From Octopus sinensis (Eukaryota): 64,000 nt of DNA. Below are positions 5,501 to 8,500 of the stretch, piece after piece (position 1 is the stretch's first letter; each line of letters begins with the position of its first letter). The position numbers and the translations under genes are program-made. Below the pieces are notes generated by a model. That model saw only the letters and a program-made list of their open reading frames with translations, was not told the origin of the DNA and made no database searches. The stretch covers positions 6,448,001 to 6,512,000 of the forward strand of contig NC_043026.1 of NCBI RefSeq assembly GCF_006345805.1, read 5' to 3'.

Positions 5501-8500
5501 AAGGTGTCACACGGGGACTGAACCTGGAACCATGTAGTTGGGTAGCAAGCTTCTAACTACTTGGCCACACCAGGTGATGATGATGTTGCTGATGATAAAT
5601 GTAGTGGTGGTGGTGGTGGTCATGGAATTGTTGGTGTTGGAAGTGCCACAGTTTGTTTTTTAACCCCGAGTCTCTTTCTTCCTGCAGCACAAGTTCTTCT
5701 GTGTCATTCACCTGGCTGCGCTGAAGGCTGTCGGAGAATCATGCGAACTACCTTTACTCTACTACCAGAATAATGTTGGCGGTGCCCTCAACTTGTTAGA
5801 GGTAAGAATTTTAGCAATCAGAAAGAAAAAAAAATATTGACAAAACATCCTTTAACCCTTTTGTTACCCCCTATTTCTGTTAAATTTCTCTGACTTTTGT
5901 TTCAAGTAATTTTGAAAACAATGAAGTGTTTAGTAAAATAACTTTGGAACATAAATTTAACATTTTAATGGAAGGTTTTTTTATTAAATCACTTCACCGG
6001 ATTGAATGGTACTGTCCAGGTGTCGAAACCATAATAATATCTGTGGGGCAGCTGATGATGGGGTTATGTTGGTATGGCTGTGGAATAGTATTATAACACA
6101 TCCTTTTGATATATAAATACTTATATTCACTTACATGTATGTGTGTGCATGTATATATACATATATATATGGATTAAATAGACCAAGAACAACAACTTCA
6201 CCCTCATGCAAATCCTCTGGGACCAAACATAGGAAGAGAAGTTATGCCCATACTGCAGCCCTAATCTTGTTAAATGCTTTTCCAATTTTTTTTTTGTTCT
6301 TTTTTTTTAATACATATTTTTCTCTTACCCACTCCTCTCTCACTCAAAGGTGATGACAGAATTTGAAGTGTTCAGAATTGTGGTGTCCAGTTCGGCCACG
6401 GTCTACGGTGTCCCTCAGGAGTTACCCCTCACCGAATCCCACCCGACAGGCAGCTGTATCAACCCATATGGACAGACGAAATACTTCATCGAGGTCATAT
6501 TAACCGACATTGCAAAGGCTGACTCAGTAAGTTGCCATAATTTCGTTGACTGTTTGTGTTCTATTAGGACCAGTGTCCTCCTCTTGATTGTTGCTTTGAC
6601 TGTGGTTCGGCTGTTGTTTGCTCCAGCTGTCTTCAGATGTCATCTGTTGAACTCCTTTGTTAAGAGATGATTAATTCTGTGCATCATTTACACTGGACGG
6701 TTGTGTGTCCTCATCTTGTTTGTTCCTACCACAATGTTTCGGCTGATTTACTCTCCACCCTTCATCAGGTGTCCTGGTGGAATTTTGAACCCAACCCTGG
6801 GTTCTCATTCCTAAGGTATTTTTTTTCCTGATGTTGTTGTTGTTGTTATTATTATTATTATTGTTATATTATGATGATGTCCATGATCCATCCATGCCTT
6901 CCACTCTAGAATGCAAATAATTTCTCTTTTTTGTTTTCTTCTCTCTGTCTGTGTGGCCTTCAGCGATGGAACGCTATAATACTGAGATACTTCAACCCAG
7001 TCGGAGCCCACAAGTCCGGCAGGATTGGCGAAAACCCTAATGGTACCCCTAACAATTTGATGCCCTTCATAGCCCAGGTGGCTGTGGGTAAACAGAAGGG
7101 TGTGAAAGTCTACGGCAATGACTATGATACTCCTGATGGTACAGGTGAGTAGCACTCACACTTCACCGTTACTCTCACTCACAATCTCTTTTACACTCTC
7201 ACTCTCTCATTTACCTTATTATACTCTTCACCCTTCACTCACACTCTTGCTTTTCACTCGCACTTTTGCTCTTCAGTTGCACTCACTCACCCATCACCAG
7301 CCCACTCTCACTCACCATCTCATCCATACTCTTGCCCTTTGTTTACACACTCAACCTTCTCTAGCACCCTCTTGCCTTTTACTCACACTCTTGCCATACA
7401 CTCATCCTCCACCTACACTCTCGTCCTCCACTCATTTTCACACTTTTCATACACCTCATGCTACAGCTGAGTAACTCTTATTCACTCTCACTCACACTCA
7501 GTCACTATCACAACAACAATCAAATGCATTATATATTCTTACATAATTATTATATATAAATCTGAATGTATGTATGTATGCACGTATATATTTCCATATC
7601 TTTTCTCCAGGTGTCCGAGACTATATCCATATTGTTGACCTAGCCAGTGGTCATGTGTCGGCCGTAGAGAAAGTGAAAGAAGATTGTGGACTTAAAGTAA
7701 GTGCTTCCCTTTTGTATTTACCATTTTCTACATATTTCTTTGTACGTAGTTTTATCTTGCTTGGAATTAGTGAGTTTTAAGAGCTCAGAGAAATGAAACT
7801 GAGGGGAAAAATGGAATGAAATATGGCTTTGCTTTTGTTTTAAAGGGGTTTTAAACCTAACTTTTTATTTGGTCCTGCAAGGGTTAAAAAAAAGAAAGTT
7901 ACCTTCTCAAGTGGGGGCGTGGGTGGGAGGAGATGAGGGTGTAGTGATGCTGCTGTGTAAGGTTCAGCGTACATGCGCAGAATGGGATTACTTCCGGTTG
8001 GCCACCGGAAGTCTTCCCCATGCGCATGTGCGGGGAACTGACCCCTAAAACGCGGTTCGCTCATTCACTCTTTCTGGCTCTAGCAGTCCTCGTGAACGGA
8101 CGTGTATTGGCAGTCTCTGAGGACTTCATACCAGCCAAGCAGCGAACCACGACGAATCATTTCGACCAACAAACAAGAATCAGTACTACAGATTCGGCTG
8201 TTGGTTTCCCTCCAGAGAACACGTGCACCAGTCCTACATTACGACGAGAAAAACACAACATTTTTTGCTGTGTTCGTAGATCGCCTGACTTGTCTGTTAT
8301 TTTAACTAAAATTAAATGTGACGGGAATCAGATCGGACACCCCTCCAGTGATACCGAATCCAGATCCTGTTACAAGGGCTAAGCAGGATTAGTGTAAGGA
8401 AGCAGTGTGTGTGAATAGCTTTGTACACATGAATGTGTGTGTGTGTCCGTGTGTCTCAGAATTATTGATTTTTGTCTACTGTAATGCTGTAGTTTGTCCC

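Follow-up and report, generated by a model that had tools for sequence, protein, structure and literature searches.

Intron 6 of the Octopus sinensis gene for UDP-glucose 4-epimerase (GALE) contains two inverted ETS/GABPA-type sites flanked by two inverted NRF1-like sites, a dyad that a preliminary description of the locus interpreted as the core of an active bidirectional promoter nested within a metabolic gene. The question raised by this arrangement is whether the intron harbors a promoter that is maintained for its function, or promoter-like DNA that arrived there by another route and has since persisted without constraint. The locus was analyzed within a stretch of 64 kb (the window, to which coordinates refer unless another locus is named) of O. 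sinensis chromosome CM016888.1 (GCA_006345805.1), to which bases 1-21642 of the window are 100% identical. With a probability of roughly 0.55, the dyad belongs to a young captured fragment that was copied from an ETS/NRF1-type promoter and is drifting neutrally in GALE intron 6. The evidence that carries this conclusion is the distribution of a 726-bp segment containing the dyad among octopus species, the form of its junctions, and the manner in which its bases have changed.

A lineage-specific segment in GALE intron 6

The exons of GALE were mapped by tblastn with a human GALE query, after which the splice sites were set. This places nine coding exons of the gene on the plus strand, and joining them yields a protein that matches XP_029653546.1 (UDP-glucose 4-epimerase isoform X1, Octopus sinensis) without a difference. 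By coding-exon count the earlier assignment to intron 6 is correct, the dyad being located between exons 6 and 7, but an acceptor just upstream of the GALE ATG suggests an extra exon in the 5' untranslated region, so that transcript numbering may be one higher. The features that define the intron are as follows.

7611-7696, plus strand: GALE coding exon 6, placed by the spliced protein match
8551-8628, plus strand: GALE coding exon 7, placed by the spliced protein match
7738-8463, no strand assigned: lineage-specific segment of 726 bp, containing the dyad and two donor-like sites

In Octopus bimaculoides, window positions 7540-7740 and 8462-8792 align to adjacent positions of the orthologous locus (14171-14373 and 14369-14711, respectively), and intron 6 is only 128 nt in length, corresponding without gaps to 41 nt of left flank and 87 nt of right flank of the O. 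sinensis intron. The O. bimaculoides intron is therefore equivalent to the joined flanks, and window positions 7738-8463 are missing there, with a microhomology (or alignment ambiguity) of only 2 nt, TT, at the junction. The segment is present in Octopus vulgaris with identical junctions, which shows that it is real DNA rather than an assembly artefact and that it predates the split of O. sinensis and O. vulgaris. The divergence of these two species is placed at 2.5 million years (My) and that of O. bimaculoides at about 34 My ago (PMC10700109). In the more distant Sepia pharaonis, intron 6 is approximately 438 nt long and AT-rich, and contains neither ETS/NRF1-type motifs nor anything else comparable to the segment.

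A further indication of the empty state comes from GALE isoform X2 (XP_036371077.1, 316 aa), which reads past the exon 6 donor into the intron ('...FSTY/LLIFVY...'). A brute-force search established that its coding sequence (7697-7737 joined to 8464-8596) can be obtained only by the deletion of exactly 726 nt, which can be placed in three equivalent ways, all of them with non-canonical borders (TT..AA, TC..AT and CT..TT), and which reproduces the empty site of O. bimaculoides exactly. Given that X2 needs this exact removal, an O. sinensis allele without the segment probably exists, and the read-through suggests that the segment is polymorphic for presence and absence or that the reference animal was heterozygous. 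Most simply, X2 would represent transcripts of a segment-less allele in which the short intron is retained; the species would then remain polymorphic for the insertion, with the empty state as the ancestral one.

Elsewhere in the gene, a reverse-transcriptase zinc-binding fragment (zf-RVT, Pfam) is located at 8763-9113 on the minus strand, within GALE intron 7; the part of the intron that contains it is also unaligned to O. bimaculoides and is probably another lineage-specific retroelement insertion. Gene models at the orthologous loci are irregular, with CPT1 and GALE fused in a single protein model of 1122 aa in O. vulgaris (CAI9742963.1; locus 10001-82722) and GALE exon 2 mis-modelled in O. 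bimaculoides (XP_052833466.1, 324 aa; locus 10001-16415).

The ETS and NRF1-like sites

The sites within the segment, together with the palindrome, the CpG-rich part and the donor-like sites, are listed below (o/e, observed/expected ratio).

7968-7979, minus strand: left NRF1-like site, TGCGCATGTACG on the minus strand, matching TGCGCATGCGCR at 10 of 12 positions; O. vulgaris differs at 7970-7971
7990-7998, minus strand: left ETS/GABPA-type site, ACTTCCGGT on the plus strand, equal to ACCGGAAGT on the minus strand
8004-8012, plus strand: right ETS/GABPA-type site, ACCGGAAGT; ACCAGAAGT in O. vulgaris
8021-8032, plus strand: right NRF1-like site, TGCGCATGTGCG, matching TGCGCATGCGCR at 11 of 12 positions
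7962-8038, no strand assigned: imperfect palindrome of 77 bp with its centre near 8001
7903-8393, no strand assigned: CpG-rich middle of the segment, between the donor-like sites, with GC 0.50 and CpG o/e 0.86
7897-7905 (7903/7902), minus strand: putative donor-like site AAG/GTAACT, kept in O. vulgaris
8391-8399 (8393/8394), plus strand: putative donor-like site AGT/GTAAGG, kept in O. vulgaris

The preliminary description proved accurate in its details here, as the four 9-mers, the 5-nt spacer of the ETS sites (TGGCC), the exact reverse complementarity of the NRF1-type pair and the outward-facing donor-like sites were all confirmed. The NRF1-like 9-mers are ACATGCGCA at 7971-7979 and TGCGCATGT at 8021-8029, and lie 10 nt (left) and 8 nt (right) from the ETS sites, in keeping with the term 'almost equidistant' that had been applied to them. 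Judged by sequence match, the interpretation as two putative class-I ETS/GABPA-type and two NRF1-like sites also holds, and the ETS (CCGGAAGT) and NRF1 (GCGCATGCGC-like) sites cluster within about 100 bp, as expected of this class of promoter.

The rarity of the motifs was assessed by counting matches over the 64 kb and over dinucleotide shuffles. Each 9-mer has exactly 2 matches in the window, both within the dyad, compared with 0.21 and 0.29 expected from the shuffles, only 1-2 of 100 of which reach 2. The cores CCGGAAG and GCGCATG are confined to the dyad both in the window and in the approximately 190 kb of octopus DNA that was searched. The symmetry of the palindrome continues past the named motifs, its outer arms (7962-7979 and 8021-8038) matching over 18 nt at 83% and its inner arms (7984-7998 and 8004-8018) over 15 nt at 87%, with arm spacings that differ by 2 nt.

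Palindromic ETS-ETS composite sites are bound by ETS dimers, for example by ETS1 on head-to-head sites. The octopus dyad resembles these in having two inverted ACCGGAAGT sites a few bases apart, but differs from the ETS1 head-to-head sites in that its cores point apart (TTCC...GGAA) across the 5-nt spacer, and binding to it is putative. The arrangement ACTTCCGGT-N5-ACCGGAAGT was also found in 93 metagenome contigs, none of them related to the octopus segment; one contains the same 23-mer as the octopus dyad, in flanks that differ. About 25 of the contigs with the ETS dyad derive from a single sample (Ga0182004), where it lies in CCGGAAGTTCCGG-rich satellite, and others are bacterial terminator hairpins. 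In unrelated eukaryote-like contigs the dyad adjoins YY1-, cAMP response element (CRE)- and CCAAT-like motifs (AAGATGGCGGC, TGACGTCA and CCAAT), and some of these contigs look like animal promoters; viral contigs gave no match. The recurrence of the dyad lends weak support to the notion that it represents ordinary promoter grammar.

The description of the GABPA/NRF1 motif pair as typical of bidirectional promoters is in agreement with the enrichment of both motifs reported for human ones (PMC3082894). A search for cephalopod promoter-motif literature, or literature on the assay for transposase-accessible chromatin with sequencing (ATAC-seq), that mentions NRF1 returned nothing. The segment is similar to the human GABPA/NRF2 and NRF1 bidirectional promoters of the CpG-island type in that ACCGGAAGT-type ETS sites and GCGCATG NRF1-type sites are combined in CpG-rich, TATA-less DNA (PMC3082894), and further in that its sites face both ways, with a donor-like site on each side. 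It is unlike these promoters in having no head-to-head gene pair and no annotated or conserved product, in being intronic and lineage-specific, in that its sites are not conserved even across 2.5 My, and in that its CpGs appear not to be protected from decay and its GC skew is of the opposite sense.

CpG content and divergence of the segment

The CpG richness that had been noted for this region was confirmed: CpG o/e is 0.86 at positions 7903-8393, whereas the GALE body elsewhere has 0.42-0.46 and the window as a whole 0.58. In octopus, 5-methylcytosine is found mainly within the bodies of genes with broad expression (PMC9476566), and the CpG-poor GALE body fits this pattern. In being a CpG-rich island within a CpG-depleted, presumably methylated gene body, the segment resembles intragenic 'orphan' CpG islands and alternative intronic promoters, but conservation and a lack of methylation are the rule for orphan islands with promoter activity, whereas the segment is an insertion with CpG decay like that of the gene body.

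Comparison of O. sinensis with O. vulgaris shows that the 71-bp core differs at 4 of 71 positions (5.6%), against 3.4% for the whole segment and 2.25% for non-CpG sites elsewhere at the locus; on this measure, the core appears to be no more conserved than neutral DNA. One of the differences converts the right ETS core from GGAA to AGAA in O. vulgaris. Two of the four fall in the left NRF1-like arm; judging from the opposite arm, the ancestral sequence was probably CGCACATGCGCA, from which O. sinensis and O. vulgaris would each have departed by one base.

Differences at CpG sites amount to 5 of 28 at 7903-8393, or 6 of 30 in the segment, versus 52 of 203 outside it, which, with such small counts, is not a significant contrast. 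The corresponding CpG divergence (18-20% inside the segment and 26% outside) well exceeds the non-CpG rate in both cases (p = 0.007-0.02). Because the divergence is similar inside and outside and above the non-CpG rate, the CpGs of the segment appear to behave like methylated gene-body CpGs and not like those of a protected island, and this test leans against a protected promoter, although the counts are small. Gene-body-like CpG decay in combination with a CpG content that is still high suggests a recent arrival from unmethylated DNA. A crude age estimated from the CpG decay of the segment is 5-16 My, which falls within the interval of 2.5-34 My.

Origin of the segment

In the sequence of events favored here, GALE intron 6 would have acquired the segment 2.5-34 My ago, once the O. 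bimaculoides lineage had split off but before O. sinensis and O. vulgaris separated. Most likely, a fragment copied from another locus would have been captured by end joining at a break in the chromosome, as suggested by a microhomology of only 2 nt and by the lack of transposon hallmarks. The source would be a TATA-less divergent promoter of the housekeeping type, as suggested by two ETS/GABP-type sites flanked by two NRF1-type sites, by the high CpG content and by the outward donor-like site on each side. Since then the segment has changed in the manner of unconstrained, germline-methylated gene-body DNA, and each of the two species shows its own erosion of the palindrome. The intact sites of O. 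sinensis could still be bound by ETS and NRF1 factors and, if unmethylated in some tissue, could start weak divergent non-coding transcription, but such transcription would be a by-product and not a selected function. The segment probably gives rise to no functional protein or conserved RNA, and GALE enzymology would be unaffected, in that no functional truncated enzyme is expected from it.

Among known systems, a close parallel is the captured or templated 'filler DNA' found at repaired double-strand breaks. Insertions of this class, like the segment, are unique sequences a few hundred bp long that lack a target-site duplication and show 0-2 nt of microhomology at their junctions, and they include small DNA-level duplications of unique sequence. 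Unlike documented filler DNA, the copy-and-capture step is in this case a reconstruction, and the donor locus was not found in the DNA searched.

Several observations weigh against this account. No donor copy was found in the approximately 190 kb of octopus DNA or in the Sepia DNA, so that the copying of the segment from a promoter is argued from its content. The 2-nt junction would fit a deletion in O. bimaculoides equally well, and the polarity of the insertion is deduced from the X2 match to the empty site, where isoform X2 is a computational model, from the reasoning on CpG decay, and from a distant outgroup with an unalignable intron. The constraint test compares two species only 2.5 My apart and involves small counts (4/71 and 5/28), which leaves room for weak or species-specific selection, and the high CpG o/e could also arise if the segment, like an active promoter, were partly shielded from methylation. 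The GC skew is +0.65 to the left of the core and -0.15 to -0.23 to its right, a pattern opposite to that of human divergent promoters, a comparison that may not apply to cephalopods.

If the segment is indeed such a fragment, it provides a caution for genome scans: what looks like a promoter module from a textbook can be neutral DNA of recent arrival, and comparison with one orthologous intron of a sister species sufficed to reveal this here.

Alternative explanations

A functional bidirectional promoter, selectively maintained within GALE and producing an antisense RNA as well as a 5'-truncated GALE transcript, is unlikely, even as a recent gain of function. In its favor, none of the four sites is disrupted in O. 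sinensis, ETS and NRF1 motifs together characterize divergent housekeeping promoters (PMC3082894), the gene body around the segment has only half its CpG o/e, and both outward donor-like sites are kept in O. vulgaris. Donors of the GTAAG type are, however, frequent by chance, and O. bimaculoides lacks the segment, as some alleles of O. sinensis probably do. Conservation across octopus species, which had been proposed as a check on the promoter, is contradicted by this absence and by the loss of one ETS core in O. vulgaris, where core divergence reaches 5.6% (4/71), and the CpGs are hypermutable in the manner of methylated gene-body CpGs.

No partner or product was found either. GALE is the only gene annotated at the O. 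sinensis locus, no nested gene is annotated in O. vulgaris or O. bimaculoides, and neither the annotation nor searches of open reading frames (ORFs) revealed head-to-head genes or transcripts. On either side of the dyad no conserved ORF, protein homolog or RNA family was found. The longest ORF of the segment, and the microsatellite that follows it, are as follows.

8020-8382, plus strand: ORF of 120 codons, the longest of the segment; broken by indels in O. vulgaris
8405-8456, plus strand: GT-rich microsatellite toward the segment's 3' end, differing in length between O. sinensis and O. vulgaris

The 120-codon ORF has no homolog among 5.8 billion proteins and no Pfam domain, and because it is also broken in O. 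vulgaris it was treated as non-coding. A 144-codon open frame has no homolog among 1.84 billion representatives, and an exact look-up of the 120-aa ORF and seven nearby ORFs (including the filled and empty read-through forms and the 73-aa truncated GALE) found none on record.

As for the 5'-truncated GALE isoform, the frame leading from 8393 into exon 7 is blocked by a TGA (8349-8351) and lacks an ATG upstream of exon 7, so that translation would begin at the exon 7 Met and would yield, at most, a C-terminal peptide of 73 residues. This peptide would contain neither the NAD-binding GxxGxxG motif (exon 1) nor the catalytic Tyr (exon 4). Members of the short-chain dehydrogenase/reductase family need both the NAD-binding motif and the catalytic Tyr, and on this basis the predicted product could not be an epimerase.

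The proposal of a nested bidirectional promoter is thus upheld in part: its motif grammar and its CpG-rich, single-copy DNA stand, but conservation, constraint and a product do not. Given that paired genes or transcripts and conserved sites are both lacking, the element is better called a promoter-like module carried by a captured fragment than a true bidirectional promoter.

A related possibility, also doubtful, is that the segment is a copied bidirectional promoter of the housekeeping type, still polymorphic for presence and absence, that does fire, producing an antisense RNA over GALE exons 1-6 together with a sense non-coding transcript. If true, this would constitute a natural experiment in promoter transplantation and transcript birth, in which filled and empty alleles could be compared within one species. 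An active and polymorphic segment would also offer a case in which to follow the behavior of an ETS/NRF1 module in a methylated cephalopod gene body, the speed at which such a module decays, and the effect of antisense transcription on a metabolic housekeeping gene.

It is likewise improbable that the segment is a low-copy or unclassified mobile element (either non-autonomous or a fragment of a retroelement 5' region) with an internal promoter. Such an origin would account for an insertion that is lineage-specific and probably polymorphic, in a transposon-dense window and with a GT microsatellite at its end, and the left junction, ATTT/A, resembles a target of the endonuclease of long interspersed nuclear elements. 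The ends of the segment, however, show no target-site duplication, no terminal inverted repeats, no long terminal repeat (LTR)-type ends (TG..CA with matching flanks) and no poly(A). Its ORFs yielded no transposon protein domain or homolog in homology and Pfam searches. No second copy was found in the window, in 7.5 kb upstream of it, in 92 kb of O. vulgaris, 26 kb of O. bimaculoides or 49 kb of Sepia DNA, where the only matches were to the microsatellite; common families of short interspersed nuclear elements (SINEs) and satellites recur many times in the same DNA. The term 'non-repetitive' that had been applied to the region accordingly holds within the approximately 190 kb of octopus DNA. 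Candidate borders that were tried and rejected are the TG..CA ends of LTR elements, Helitron ends, target duplications of the TTAA, TA or TWA type, and the borders of U12 or group II introns, none of which fits the segment.

Still less probable is a segment ancestral to Octopus that O. bimaculoides lost through microhomology-mediated deletion. The TT microhomology fits a deletion as well as an insertion, but X2 implies the same empty site in O. sinensis, which would require either a repeat of the deletion or a polymorphism of 34 My, both unlikely. Moreover, at the rate of CpG decay measured here, a methylated segment of 34 My should have fallen to a CpG o/e of about 0.42, as in the flanks, and not 0.86, and Sepia has no counterpart.

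Very little speaks for the palindrome as a structured RNA of the GALE intron, such as an intronic hairpin resembling a microRNA precursor. A hairpin of high stability is predicted for either strand (-50.6 kcal/mol with z = -6.6, and -46.8 kcal/mol with z about -6, on the other strand), but a stable hairpin is a trivial property of any DNA palindrome, and the terminal loop is only 5 nt. In O. vulgaris the folding energy is -39.9 versus -50.6 kcal/mol, a loss of about 11 kcal/mol, as three of the four differences break pairs and none is compensatory. Rfam gave no match on the whole window at gathering thresholds, nor on 7650-8560 at E <= 1, and a tRNA scan gave no match; the absence of the segment from O. 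bimaculoides also argues against such an RNA.

Chance co-occurrence of the motifs in CpG-rich DNA is scarcely credible, for although the window contains two further long perfect or near-perfect nested palindromes (33279-33357 and, within a CpG-rich tandem repeat, 51359-51438), only 0.2-0.3 matches per window are expected for each 9-mer pair and both lie within 60 bp, two nested inverted 9-mer pairs with a common centre arose in only 1 of 200 Markov shuffles of the window, and the palindrome arms match beyond the motifs.

Other features of the window

Downstream of GALE, a long open frame at 22402-23199 on the plus strand encodes about nine tandem C2H2 zinc fingers and is likely to be an exon of a zinc-finger gene. 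A stretch rich in CpG (o/e up to 1.25) at 41000-41600 includes, at 41388, the only other CGGAAGT in the window, and could be a genuine promoter of a neighboring gene. Several of the most CpG-dense spots in the window are accounted for by a CpG-rich family of tandem repeats with units of approximately 68 nt (10913-11521, 26103-26470, 39749-40054, 47714-48058 and 50784-51404), a piece of which was annotated as the start of the protein in an earlier GALE model for O. bimaculoides (A0A0L8GR26).

The transposon content of the window includes a 278-codon open frame at 36598-37431 on the minus strand with mariner-type Transposase_1 and helix-turn-helix domains, which represents a DNA transposon remnant, and a high-copy SINE-like repeat that occurs about every 5 kb, often beside TA/CA microsatellites, at the following positions.

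14654-14997, 15476-15709, 19353-19832, 38000-38400, 46381-46647, 51945-52216, 58087-58388 and others: SINE-like repeat

The remaining features are a 100-N assembly gap at 26628-26727 and a stretch of about 2.5 kb, at 53000-55600, of almost pure A/T (GC 0-13%).

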